Shown here: positions 4,792 through 16,206 of the stretch, piece after piece
Position numbering within the stretch: position 1 is the stretch's first letter
Layout of the letters: every line of letters starts with the position of its first letter
Source: Saccostrea cucullata
Taxonomy: Eukaryota
Reading direction: 5' to 3'
NCBI RefSeq assembly: GCF_032062105.1
Contig: NW_026927571.1
Span: 1-64,000 of the forward strand
Length of the DNA stretch: 64,000 bases
Position numbers and translations under genes: made by a program
The notes under the pieces: model-generated
The model's database searches: none
What the model was told of the DNA's origin: nothing
Seen by the model: the letters and a program-made list of their open reading frames with translations, nothing else

Positions 4792-7700
4792 ATGTCTAAA
4801 GAACGCGGCAATCTTTCTCTCATCAAATCGAGTGATGAAGACGGGAAGAAAATCCAGGGTAGAAAACCAAAAGTTAACGATCATAAAGGTACCGTCTTAC
4901 ACAGTGCATACGTATGTCATTCTTGTGTTCTTCTCAGATTTTTTTAATGTTTTCTTTTACATGTTTTATACCGTTTTCTTCCTGCTTTAGCAAACTTTGT
5001 TATTCAGCATGATTATGGAGATAGTGTAAGCAATAACGGGTATTAATGCATTGCTAGAGGATTTACCCACTAATTGATGCATTTATAAAAAGGGTTTTGT
5101 TTCATTGATGTGCCCTATATGTGTAAAGATCACTTATTTAATTCTATTCGAGATATTGTTTTTGCTGAATAATTTTTAATTATGTTCTGTTATATTTTCT
5201 TCAATGCACAGATAAAGGACACAAAGAAAATAAAGTTGCTGAGAAGGTAAACGTTAAAAATCTATCATTGCATCCATGTATACTCTAGAAGAAAATAATT
5301 ATGAATTTAACAAATCAGTGGACTGATCAGGCCTACATCTTCTTTGAGATAATTCATTGAAATTCTTATTACATAACACACTTGCTGAAAAGTCTGAACA
5401 TAAGGACGAAACTTATATACTAGTACTTGAAAATTTTATCAAACTTGAATTGCCCATCAATTTAATTGATATTAACTTTTCAAATATGGCATCCTTTATT
5501 GCCTAGTAATCACTGAAGAAAATTTCTTGAGTACTTTAAATCCTTTCCTCTAGAATCCTGTGAAAAAAGTTAACTACACTGATATAGAAGCAAGACAGTT
5601 GCTGACAATTTTTAGTAGTGCTTTAGATGACATAAAAGTAGACTTGGCTAAATCTGAACGGAGTGGTGCAGAGAATGTGACGTTATCATCTAGTCAACAA
5701 ACATTACTGGCTACAGAAAAACAGAAACTAGATACATTACTCCACAACTTAAAGTCAACAGAAATTGATTGCCAGGACGATCCATCTAAGATCAGTGATT
5801 TAATCAAACAAAACTCACTCAAGGTTGTAATCACCGTAAATTCATATGGCAAGACAGTTGCCTACTATAATGAGACTAGCGAATTGCGGAGGTTTCAGAG
5901 TGTTTTGAAAGATAAAACACAAACTGATGTTGATAAGAAGGAGGAAAAGAAAACAGTCAGTAGGCGCAATAGAACTTTTGGGGACGAGTCTGATACTGAG
6001 GCCAGAAAGTCGCCACAGGATAACCAATCATACAAGAGTCAGCTAGAATGGAAACCTTCCAACGGTTCACCTTCTTCAAATGATTCAAGTGGTTCTAAAG
6101 ATACAAGGAGCACTTCGACATCACTGGGAGAAAAGGTCGAAATTAAACAGATCATCACTCAGCATGGCATTACTACAAAACTGTATAAAGGATCTATTAC
6201 CAGAGCAAAAGTGGATGCCGTTGTCAATGCAGCAAACACTCATCTTGATAACTGTGGGGGAGTTGCTGAGGTCATTTCGAAGGCTGCTGGTAATGAATTG
6301 GAAAAAGCCTGTAGACAAAAGATGAGCAAACGTTCGAGGATAGATGTTGCAGAAAATGTAGTCACCACTGGTGGAAATCTACCTTGTCGTTGGGTGATCC
6401 ATGCCGTGGGACCCCGCTGGAGTGATTACAGAAATAAAGAAGAAGCTCTAGAAGACCTTTATCGAACAGTGGTCAATATTCTTCATAAAGCATGTGAACG
6501 GAAGATGGAATCTGTTGTTATGCCGCCAATTAGTTCTGGTATGTTATCAAATTGATTTGCATACTCGTAGTAGATATCAGCCATTGAAAAAGACAGAGCT
6601 TTACACACTCTTTTACTAGTATGCTTTATTCAATGTGTGCAGTTTGATAGTCCCTCTCTTCAAAATGACAACAGCATATGCCATTTTGAGATTAACTTAA
6701 ACTGTCCCGAGTTATGGAGTTACAAAGAAAGAAAATTAAAAGTGAAAGACATTAAGTATTAAAATACATGAGGGGGCACTTAATTTTTTAGTGTCACATT
6801 TCTTTCGACGTCCCTAGAGGAAGTCCCACGTAACCTTCATTTTGGACAATTAAATTTGAACCTTGTTTCAATTTTGTCCACAAAATTCTGATTATTTCAC
6901 GCTTATTTCGTGTTCTTTTTGAGTTCCATCTTATTTTTTACTCAAAAATTAGGATAGATTGCAGGAGATTATCCAAACACAATGGTTATCGAAAGATTAG
7001 AAATGCATTAAAAAATCTTTAGACCAAAGTGCATTTTTCTTGGGAAAATATAAAGTTTCATACTGGATTTCTTAATGTACCACCAATATAGAATAAATAG
7101 ATAATGTCTTTTTATAAAGATCACATGTAAAATATACAAGTTTTGAGAGGAATATGCATTCAAAATTATTAAGCGGTTTATTTTTACATTCTATTTCAGG
7201 AATTTTTGGTGTTCCAAAACAAGCTTGCGCTGCAATGTACGTCCGAGCTTTACTCGATTTTGCGGAAAATTTCCTTCCTGGCCTTGACAATAAAATTAAA
7301 GAATTCCACATTGTTGACATCAAAGAAGATATGCTAGATTCGATTTTTGCGGAATATAACGGTCAACACAAAAATGGAAGGTCCTATCTAGAACCTGGCA
7401 GTGTATTAAAACGTCTCGAAATAACTCCATGGAATACTGGGCATTCATGGAAGCGTAGTGGTTCTGACCACAGCAATTATAGCAATTCCGGCAGTGCTGG
7501 AAATACTAATATTCAAACAAGATTTGCAAATAAATATCAAGCTGGAAAAGCCATTGTAAAATGTGTTTCGAATAAAACTGCTACAGGTTCAGATGAATTC
7601 TTCATAGGAGACCTATTGAAGGTTTTAATTTACAAAGAAAATATTATTGAGTTGAAGAATATAAATATTATTGTGTGTGCAGAGGGTCGAGAAGGTTTTG

Positions 7701-9444
7701 GACAGGGATATACCAGTAAGCAAATCATAGAGAAGGAGAATGATAAATATAAGAAAAGAGTTAAAAAACTCTTCGATGATTCCAAATATCGAAATTTCTC
7801 GGACGTACTTCAAATTGATTCAGGAATCCTTCATTATGATTTGGTTTTCTTTGCAATTATAAAAAGATTCCCAAACTCAAAACCACAAGATGATTGTCTG
7901 AGTCTTTTGAAGAGAACTACATTAAAGATTTTGGAAAAAGCTAACAAGAGGAAGACTAAGAAAACGAAAAATAAACCACTGTCTCTGGCCATGCCGTTAC
8001 TTGGAACAGGTTTGTGTACTTAAAATAAAAGTAAAAATTCCAAAGTTTTAACCTGTTTAGCGAAGATAAGCCATTATTTGATAGTAAAAATAATCTAAAA
8101 ATTTTAATATATTCCAGGTTCTGTGAAAGACACACAGCATCTTCAGGAATATGCAGACGTTATTTGCAATTGCATTTTGGAGTTTTCAAAACAGATAAAG
8201 CAAGACACAAGGCTTCGTGAAATACATCTAGTTAATTCACAGGCACCTGCCACAGATGCCCTCAAGAAAGCTTTCCAAAATTGTGAATGTGCAGATCCTA
8301 ACAGCACTAAGCAATCATCACCTAAACCATATGGACAAAACGATACCCGACGCTGGCACTTTGATCCGAAAAAATATAAATACGAAGAAATGTGGAAGAT
8401 ACTTGAAAAATCGGAGGTTGATTTCGAGGAATTTATTAAAGCATGTCCTCAAAAACATCCAGTTCAAGAAGAAACATCAGCAATCTCTGGAGTGAAAAGC
8501 ATATCTAAAGGAAGTTCTGTGGGTAATGTTGTATTGATCGAATCCTCTGATGACGAAGCAGAACCTTGTGACACAGAACTCAAAAGGAAAGAAAAAGATG
8601 CAATTGCAAAGGCAGGAGCAAATACGGATCCCAAAGTTAACGTTCAGGAAAGTGAGGACGAAGAATCAAAATGCATTATTTGTATGGACGAAAAGATGGA
8701 GGACCCCGTGAAGCTAAAGACATGTGGCCATTCTTTTTGTAGAGAATGTATTAAAGATTATTTTTTGCACAAATCTGCTTGTCCTATCTGCAACACTGTG
8801 TACGGGGATATGTTTGGCAATCAACCAGAGGGAACTGCTAAAATCTACACAGACAAAGCTCCATTACCCGAGTTTTCTTGTCCTACAATCATCATTGATT
8901 ACGATATCCCTGATGGTGTCCAAACGGTAATTCTTTTTTTTATTGATTGATTTATGTCAATTCAATTCCTTTCACAAAATGTAATCAAATCAAAATTACA
9001 TTGAACACAAAAACTTATACATTGTAGGAAGAACATCCAAATCCTGATGTTCCATTCACTGGAGTTTCTCGCCAGGCTTATCTTCCAGACAATGAAGATG
9101 GTAGAAAAATTTTAGGATTGCTGAAACGTGCCTTCGAGCACCGTCTGATCTTCACGGTTGGTTTTTCTCGAACCTCCGGTAAAGACAATATAGTCACGTG
9201 GAATGATATCCATCACAAAACAAGGAGAGATGGGGGACCTGAAAAGTAAGTATATACTTTTATTTACATATGACAAATACATATATTTTTGTATTTTCAT
9301 ATTGTATATCTAGCCAACATCGAGAAGTGAGGTTATTTAAAGATATTCAATTATTTCTTTTATACTAGATATGGATATCCAGATCCTGAGTATCTACAAA
9401 GAGTTAAAGAAGAACTGGAAGCGAAGGGAATAACAGAAAACTGA
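4792..9444 (+). CDS. DTX3L-like: Macrodomain x2 - RING(C3HC4) - Deltex C-terminal (DTC) E3 ubiquitin ligase, paralogue 1, ~1009 aa
   Basis: Exons 4792-4888, 5212-5246, 5554-6538, 7200-8009, 8118-8926, 9028-9245, 9369-9444; all GT-AG with consistent phase, 3030 nt. Macro1: [19 protein letters not shown]...VIHAVGP...MPPISSG|IFG. Degenerate macro2 ends [12 protein letters not shown]: CIIC...CGHSFCREC...CPIC. DTC: EEHPNP...[11 protein letters not shown]...RLIFTVG...[10 protein letters not shown]...[21 protein letters not shown]. Confidence 0.92.
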
Positions 9445-15800: not shown

Positions 15801-16206
15801 GACGTCTCATTCTGGGAATGCTTAAACGTGCTTTCGAACATCGTCTGATCTTCACGGTTGGTTTTTCTCGAACTTCCGGTAGAGACAACGTGGTCACGTG
15901 GAACGACATCCATCACAAAACAAGGAGAGATGGAGGGCCTGAAAAGTAAACGTTATTAATTTTAATAAAACCAAACAAAAAAAAAATATTGAACAAGTCA
16001 AAAACAAATGCAGACTTGGCTGTTCATGAAACACATTTTTTTGTCTTTTAATTACTTTGTTTTTATTTTTGAATATTTATCAGAAATATTTAATTCAAAT
16101 TATATCATTGTTAGTATTTTATTGTTTCAGATATGGTTATCCTGATCCAGAATACTTAACAAGAGTTATAGATGAACTGAATGCCAAAGGAATTTCAGAG
16201 GAATGA
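12864..16206 (+). CDS. DTX3L-like: Macrodomain x2 - RING - DTC E3 ubiquitin ligase, paralogue 2, ~862 aa, with proline-rich decapeptide repeat
   Basis: Exons 12864-13278, 13398-14477, 14767-15566, 15728-15945, 16131-16206; same intron positions and phases as gene 1, 2589 nt. Macro motifs [11 protein letters not shown]...LPPIGSG and [14 protein letters not shown]...LSLLGTG. RING CVIC...CQHEFCREC...[33 protein letters not shown]. Confidence 0.92.
13738..13996 (+). repeat. Coding 30-bp minisatellite, ~8 copies, ([10 protein letters not shown])n
   Basis: Unit TACCCAAGCAATCCAGCTCCTGTACACCCA repeated in frame between macro1 and macro2 of gene 2; absent from gene 1. Confidence 0.95.

Follow-up and report, generated by a model that had tools for sequence, protein, structure and literature searches.

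Tandem macrodomain-RING-DTC genes of the oyster Saccostrea cucullata as probable members of a widespread invertebrate family of Deltex-type ubiquitin ligases

Did oysters newly join a PARP9-like reader of ADP-ribose to a DTX3L-like ubiquitin ligase, or do they share this arrangement with many other animals? The question was raised by two adjacent genes located in the first 64,000 nucleotides of contig NW_026927571.1 from Saccostrea cucullata (assembly GCF_032062105.1, forward strand; this whole stretch is hereafter called the window), each of which an initial annotation had described as a fusion of two macrodomains with a RING-DTC module. The window is AT-rich (~33 % GC) and its contig (C9708) belongs to a 1.17-Gb assembly of 23,869 contigs. 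With a probability of about 0.78, the two genes are intact and belong, as tandem paralogues, to a family of DTX3/DTX3L-type Deltex E3 ligases that is widespread among invertebrates and carries a pair of PARP14/PARP9-type macrodomains in cis and no PARP catalytic domain.

Searches of the window with exon pieces (tblastn) uncovered exactly two full copies, in tandem and both on the + strand. The corresponding proteins were recovered by searching a representative library with the RING exon and then with the full length of the best match, and blastp of the exons against these proteins displayed 100 % identity. Exon sets were taken as the GT-AG combinations whose spliced translation was identical to the recovered proteins, which left one solution per gene:

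4792..9444, + strand: gene 1, RefSeq LOC134274798 (P0155, 'uncharacterized protein', Saccostrea cucullata), 1009 residues, seven coding exons
4792-4888, 5212-5246, 5554-6538, 7200-8009, 8118-8926, 9028-9245 and 9369-9441, + strand: exons of gene 1, stop codon at 9442-9444, translation identical to P0155
12864..16206, + strand: gene 2, RefSeq LOC134274799 (P0161, 'uncharacterized protein'), 862 residues, five coding exons
12864-13278, 13398-14477, 14767-15566, 15728-15945 and 16131-16206, + strand: exons of gene 2, translation identical to P0161

The start, the end and the 8009/8118 and 14477/14767 junctions proposed initially were exact to the base. All internal junctions were of the GT-AG type in both genes. 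The intron positions announced as identical were indeed common to both: four introns interrupted homologous residues in equal phases (SSG/IFG and GTG/S in phase 1, QT/E in phase 0 and PEK/YGY in phase 2). Gene 1 displayed two additional 5' exons and an N-terminal region absent from gene 2. Its parts were ordered as a KH-like pair, macrodomain 1 (MD1), macrodomain 2 (MD2), a linker, RING and DTC, and those of gene 2 as MD1, a proline-rich repeat, MD2, RING and DTC. Exon by exon, Pfam recognized in both genes two successive Macro exons and an exon in which a linker precedes a C3HC4 RING and the initial 40 DTC residues, followed downstream by a DTC core exon of 73 codons and a short terminal exon. 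On full-length proteins, Macro was detected at 1e-39 and 3e-26 in genes 1 and 2, respectively, in two stretches each, and RING at 1e-9. Pfam and exon structure therefore agreed on the single-chain macro-macro-RING-DTC order that had been claimed for both genes.

The two paralogues shared 37-42 % identity in most exons and 93 % in the DTC core. Nucleotide identity of this exon amounted to 80 %, third codon positions were only 62 % identical and the flanking introns matched at 57-68 of 100 bases. Recent gene conversion was excluded by this divergence of third positions and introns; as judged from these sequences, the amino-acid identity of the DTC core is explained by purifying selection.

The C-terminal module placed both proteins among the Deltex ligases, as the RING was directly followed by DTC, after which both open reading frames (ORFs) ended immediately:

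8663..8800, + strand: C3HC4 RING of gene 1, residues 825-870, Pfam zf-C3HC4_2 at 1.9e-9, eight zinc ligands located by regular expression
8816-8926, 9028-9245 and 9369-9441, + strand: DTC of gene 1, residues 876-1009, in three exons and then the stop codon (to 9444), Pfam DTC at 3e-55
15300-15437, + strand: RING of gene 2, detected by Pfam
15453-15566, 15728-15945 and 16131-16203, + strand: DTC of gene 2, Pfam at 9e-54

All C3HC4 zinc ligands were intact in both genes. The nearest solved DTC structure was that of human DTX3L (3pg6, 4e-53), followed by DTX2 (1e-47) and DTX1 (1e-40), according to a sequence search of the PDB. Residues H707, Y719 and E733 of DTX3L, listed as needed for ubiquitination of ADP-ribose (Picard et al., bioRxiv 2026, 10.64898/2026.04.23.720386), aligned with H974, Y986 and E1000 of gene 1 and with H827, Y839 and E853 of gene 2. 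The catalytic histidine and glutamate were invariant in 31 relatives, so that the DTC motifs are intact, as first reported. The absence of a PARP domain was likewise borne out: Pfam detected none in either full-length protein and no PF00644 match fell on the contig of the window, against at least 46 elsewhere in the genome.

The macrodomains were of the PARP14 MD1/MD2 tandem type and were distributed as follows:

6142..7414, + strand: MD1 of gene 1, residues 241-444, of PARP14/PARP9 MD1 type, split by intron 6539-7199 within SSG/IFG
7592..8287, + strand: MD2 of gene 1, residues 504-699, divergent, split by intron 8010-8117
12921-13278 and 13398-13597, + strand: MD1 of gene 2, matching PARP14 at 8e-21
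14096-14477 and 14767-14915, + strand: MD2 of gene 2, aligning best with PARP14 MD2 (7e-9)

Matches of gene 1 MD1 in the PDB comprised PARP14 MD1 (3q6z, 1.4e-26; 3vfq, 1.5e-38), PARP9 MD1 (9qyd, 1.1e-24) and MacroD-type hydrolases. Hydrolytic macrodomains are recognized by an asparagine or serine and a glycine flanking loop 1 and by hydrophobic and aromatic residues in loop 2 (PMC10221186), and the MD1 domains of PARP14 and PARP9 are Glu-ADP-ribose hydrolases (PMC10499325). Gene 1 MD1 retained this signature completely, namely NAAN...GGV (within a stretch of 13 residues) and SSGIFG. The corresponding motifs N-x-A-N...GG and SSG[IVL][FY]G were kept in 28 of 31 aligned family members, gene 1 among them. 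The exceptions were gene 2, its S. echinata orthologue and one Logan relative, in which SIWD or SVLG replaced NAAN and the catalytic asparagine was lost; gene 2 MD1 itself displayed SIWD. The hydrolase signature was absent from MD2 in both genes. Gene 1 MD2 scored 20.2 bits with Pfam Macro on its own exon (6e-4, below the 22-bit cut-off) and formed the second Macro stretch of the full protein; it had no sequence match in the PDB at 0.01, and its AlphaFold2 (AF2) model adopted a macro-like alpha/beta fold with a predicted local distance difference test score (pLDDT) of 85-95.

The initial description of the macrodomains as a reader turned out to be too simple for gene 1 MD1, which kept loops 1 and 2 of PARP14/PARP9 MD1 and is of hydrolase type: it may, besides reading ADP-ribose, also erase the Glu/Asp-linked form, because its signature is complete. 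Gene 2 is more likely a pure binder, since its sequence has lost both the catalytic asparagine and the KH-like N-terminus.

Relatives of these genes were widespread. About three quarters of the best 120 full-length matches displayed both PF01661 and PF18102 (counted by the author from precomputed Pfam lists), and these Macro+DTC proteins were distributed over Cnidaria, Mollusca, Annelida, Brachiopoda, Echinodermata, Hemichordata and Cephalochordata:

Bivalves: Saccostrea, Crassostrea, Magallana, Pinctada, Mytilus, Tegillarca, Solemya, Mercenaria, Mya and scallops
Gastropods: Patella, Haliotis, Batillaria, Biomphalaria and Gigantopelta
Others: Owenia, Lingula, crinoids, a brittle star, hemichordates, amphioxus (one protein named 'DTX3L') and the coral Stylophora

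Vertebrate matches among the same 120 displayed RRM/KH domains and no PF01661. All relatives bore automatic names (uncharacterized, PARP14-like, RING-type E3 or DTX), as do the RefSeq models of the window; the guess that unremarked automated annotations already existed was therefore correct. A survey of macroPARPs had gathered tandem-macrodomain proteins from all Metazoa and dropped those devoid of a PARP domain (PMC10221186), which is why Macro-RING-DTC proteins went unremarked there. In our literature search, no paper treated a Macro-RING-DTC protein biochemically and none combined DTX3L, ostreid herpesvirus 1 (OsHV-1) and oyster; the sole link to molluscs that it yielded was a co-expression module of Aplysia with ZNFX1 and SAMD9 (PMC8195618). 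The genes are ordinary members of a known, little-studied and uncharacterised family.

Two readings deny the antiquity or the unity of this architecture. Macro exons and RING-DTC exons might constitute separate transcripts merged by gene prediction: both RefSeq entries are computational models, and databases hold short ORF products comprising RING-DTC alone. This is very unlikely, because the disputed intron (8010-8117 in gene 1) falls within macrodomain 2 itself, the RING exon opening with the final third of the macro fold, a helix-strand-helix; because reading frames and phases run unbroken across GT-AG introns in both paralogues; and because Logan contigs of relatives displayed a single uninterrupted ORF from macro to DTC (978 residues in L001, 3510 nt, and 810 residues in L002, 2617 nt), the product of L001 being colinear with gene 1 at 49 % identity and gap-free at all four junctions. 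The same arrangement is also predicted in dozens of species. The view that this lineage hard-wired reader and writer in an unremarked fusion of its own is hardly tenable. The architecture is real and tetrapod DTX3L is devoid of it, but coral, annelid, brachiopod, echinoderms, hemichordates, amphioxus and many molluscs display it as well. PARP9 is moreover confined to jawed vertebrates (PMC10221186), and loss of the DTX3L macrodomain once PARP9 had appeared is already described in a 2026 preprint, which also reports that RRM and RING-DTC were retained in most metazoan DTX3L orthologues (Picard et al., bioRxiv 2026, 10.64898/2026.04.23.720386). The fusion is hence not new, being present in public annotation and remarked on by Picard et al., who devote one sentence and a figure, and no biochemistry, to macrodomain-bearing orthologues; their statement is the idea of the initial annotation viewed from the vertebrate side. 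Because the fused architecture spans coral to amphioxus, it is rather the split vertebrate state that looks derived, as far as this wide invertebrate spread can tell.

A third reading bears on function. The sequences show gene structure, domains, conserved residues and taxonomic spread; that the proteins bind and hydrolyse ADP-ribose, transfer ubiquitin or take part in immunity is inferred. ADP-ribose would be written by other enzymes, dozens of PARP catalytic loci being present in the genome; the macrodomains would dock the protein on mono-ADP-ribosylated proteins or nucleic acids; the RING would bring in E2~ubiquitin; and the DTC pocket (His974/Glu1000, Tyr986) would pass ubiquitin to ADP-ribose or to a nearby substrate. 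Transfer of ubiquitin onto ADP-ribose by DTC has been shown for human DTX2 and DTX3L. Gene 1 MD1 may in addition remove Glu/Asp-linked ADP-ribose, like PARP9 MD1 in the human PARP9-DTX3L complex. By analogy with that complex, for which the same is inferred, the mechanism proposed initially appears reasonable, with the correction that gene 1 MD1 is of hydrolase type. Alternatively, the proteins might mainly act as erasers or negative regulators, MD1 removing PARP14-like marks from Glu/Asp and the ligase serving turnover or auto-regulation. The closest hydrolases of gene 1 MD1 (PARP14 MD1, PARP9 MD1 and MacroD) and its fully kept loop 1 and loop 2 residues speak for this, as does the restraint of PARP14 ADP-ribosylation by human PARP9 MD1 (PMC11251020, PMC10499325). 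The DTC His/Tyr/Glu residues for ADP-ribose ubiquitination are nevertheless invariant across the family, and the ligase was kept in gene 2 and its orthologues despite loss of the catalytic asparagine; a predominant eraser function is improbable, and the two activities are not mutually exclusive. The genes may have the antiviral role suggested at the outset; the interferon-stimulated response element-like motif GAAANNGAAAS displayed two matches for 2.27 expected, and no enrichment.

Several points weigh against the interpretation as DTX3/DTX3L-type ligases with a working macrodomain pair in one chain. A quick tree of the RING-DTC module (maximum likelihood, 51 rows and 195 columns, without a DTX1/2/4 outgroup) grouped vertebrate DTX3L in one clade (Shimodaira-Hasegawa-like approximate likelihood ratio test, SH-aLRT, 98) and placed both window genes within a group of mollusc proteins that carry macrodomains (83-91); its base was a polytomy and macrodomain-bearing proteins were spread over several groups. 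Identities of 48-55 % to proteins named DTX3 compare with 52 % to DTX3L, and the tree does not separate orthology to DTX3L from orthology to DTX3. Gene 1 MD2 is so divergent that ADP-ribose binding may be absent from it. The full-length AF2 model of gene 1 (mean pLDDT 76.7) comprised confident domains at residues 47-171, 241-444, 504-699, 725-751, 825-870 and 876-1009, with disordered linkers between them; because its predicted template modelling score (pTM) was 0.38, it offers no reliable inter-domain geometry and is uninformative as to how the macrodomains are placed relative to DTC. The junctions of the window, finally, rest on RefSeq models and on transcript contigs of relatives.

The N-terminal domain of gene 1 was less easily assigned:

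5560..5934, + strand: N-terminal domain of gene 1, residues 47-171, predicted KH type I-like unit followed by a second unit

In the AF2 model, residues 47-110 followed the beta-alpha-alpha-beta-beta-alpha order of type I KH domains and preceded a second beta-alpha-beta-beta-alpha unit. The pLDDT of this domain was ~90 in the full-length model; a model of the isolated domain reached a mean of just 69. When the latter was compared with the full PDB (VIA-align), nearly all top rows were KH domains, led by PCBP2 KH3 with a borderline Z of 8.5 (root-mean-square deviation 2.1 over 65 residues), in a range where chance arrangements occur. Foldseek returned nothing for this model at E<=0.001, the domain contained no GXXG loop, and Atlas features pointed to KH_1 / KH_I_RBM43 at 0.82-0.83, as a lead. 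Its designation as KH-like is accordingly a lead provided by models. The domain was conserved just among close oyster relatives. Neither window protein matched the RRM, alpha/beta or KH-like Pfam domains of DTX3L (PF23222, PF21717, PF21718), even at E<=1.

Further elements were located in the linkers:

8522..8557, + strand: motif resembling a SUMO-interacting motif (SIM), gene 1, 12 residues of hydrophobic-acidic type, 48 residues upstream of RING, in a disordered linker (pLDDT <50)
15192-15224, + strand: putative SIM-like motif of gene 2, from its sequence pattern
13737..13997, + strand: coding tandem repeat in exon 2 of gene 2, 30 bp x 8.7 copies (Tandem Repeats Finder score 361, 89 % matches)

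The SIM-like motifs consisted of a hydrophobic run followed by Ser/Asp/Glu and preceded RING by 39-48 residues in genes 1 and 2; motifs of the same kind were encountered 20-48 residues upstream of RING in nine of the 31 relatives, gene 2 included. The otherwise disordered linker between MD2 and RING of gene 1 also displayed a small, confidently predicted strand-helix element (sequence of 26 residues; residues 725-751, 8359-8439, + strand), which was conserved among oyster relatives. The repeat of gene 2 encodes an array of proline-rich decapeptides that links its two macrodomains. Its length is probably variable to judge from sequence; the S. echinata orthologue was just 51 % identical over the exon bearing it.

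The claim that the genes are tandem and locally expanded was substantiated by the two paralogues of the window and by the rest of the assembly. At approximately 23 loci, an MD1 exon and a DTC-core exon shared a strand and lay no more than 14 kb apart, some of these loci being haplotig duplicates. The main cluster, on contig C10065 (~4-202 kb), comprised nine gene-like loci in which a macrodomain preceded DTC, distributed over both strands of ~200 kb and including the nearest paralogue of gene 1 (65 % identical in MD1); this contig also harbored a DTC exon near 4.4 kb without a paired macrodomain match. Equal-scoring matches were encountered on different contigs, such as C8491/C7504, C13993/C19684 and C520/C18530. 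Such pairs of identical score indicate uncollapsed haplotigs, and raw copy counts would overstate the size of the family. Among the RefSeq models of Saccostrea cucullata, at least nine displayed the Macro-RING-DTC architecture. Pieces of a third paralogue were located upstream of gene 1:

1844-2131, + strand: piece of an N-terminal domain (tblastn with residues 30-128 of P0001, 69 % identity, 3e-33)
2657-2845 and 2854-2997, + strand: start of an MD1 in two frames (tblastn with residues 208-320 of P0166, 1e-18)

Nothing else of this copy was found, and no RING or DTC preceded gene 1; by its sequence the remnant is a dead third copy. The remainder of the window harbored the following ORFs, of which the first looks intronless amid an intron-rich region and the other three are unrelated to the ligases:

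22445-24277, + strand: uninterrupted 610-residue ORF with AMP-binding and AMP-binding_C (acyl/aryl-CoA ligase type)
37059-37847, + strand: leucine-rich-repeat ORF
53850-54962, - strand: protein kinase, single ORF of 370 residues
61787-62230, + strand: exon of a ZIP zinc transporter

A doubtful but conceivable extension is that the tandem pair embodies a division of labour, in which gene 1 (KH-like, with a hydrolase-competent MD1) would edit and ubiquitinate ADP-ribose while gene 2 (hydrolase-dead and repeat-linked) would only read it; together with ~20 further copies they might constitute a diversifying arm of defence that relies on ADP-ribose and ubiquitin, in an animal devoid of interferon of the vertebrate type. 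If the division of labour were true, it would offer a one-polypeptide model for dissecting the cooperation between macrodomains and DTC. A protein that unites the two halves of the human PARP9-DTX3L machine in a single chain could ease biochemical and structural work on how recognition or removal of ADP-ribose is coupled to its ubiquitination, and the occurrence of hydrolase-type and hydrolase-dead MD1 in adjacent paralogues provides a ready natural experiment. The expansion would also fit, by analogy, the general pattern of enlarged innate-immune gene families in bivalves.

Among known systems, human DTX3L shares with both genes the C-terminal C3HC4 RING and DTC (RING-DTC 52 % identical), with H707/Y719/E733 kept. 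It has KH-like domains of its own, comparable to the KH-like domain predicted at the N-terminus of gene 1, but its RRM, alpha/beta and KH_DTX3L Pfam domains have no counterpart among the matches of the window proteins. The macrodomain pair of the window resembles MD1-MD2 of PARP9, whose PARP-like domain was encountered nowhere in the unit; in the PARP9-DTX3L complex the macrodomains are supplied by the partner, whereas the window genes carry them in cis. PARP14 and PARP9 display a tandem MD1-MD2 of the same subtype, with the hydrolase signature on MD1 and not on MD2, as in gene 1. These macroPARPs end in a WWE-PARP catalytic module, in contrast to the RING-DTC found at that place in the window proteins, and WWE was absent from the 20 long matches scanned among the best 150. 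On these sequence features, the genes are filed with DTX3/DTX3L-type Deltex ligases and not with macroPARPs, despite the 'PARP14-like' label given by NCBI to relatives. DTX1, DTX2 and DTX4 also carry an ADP-ribose-type reader in cis to RING-DTC, but theirs is a tandem WWE, while the window genes display a macrodomain pair and a RING of the C3HC4 type of DTX3/DTX3L. The closest counterparts are the macrodomain-bearing DTX3L orthologues of Picard et al. (10.64898/2026.04.23.720386), a preprint in which bivalve expansions and the hydrolase signature are not treated: they mostly possess an RRM, which both window genes lack, and belong to the same architecture class.

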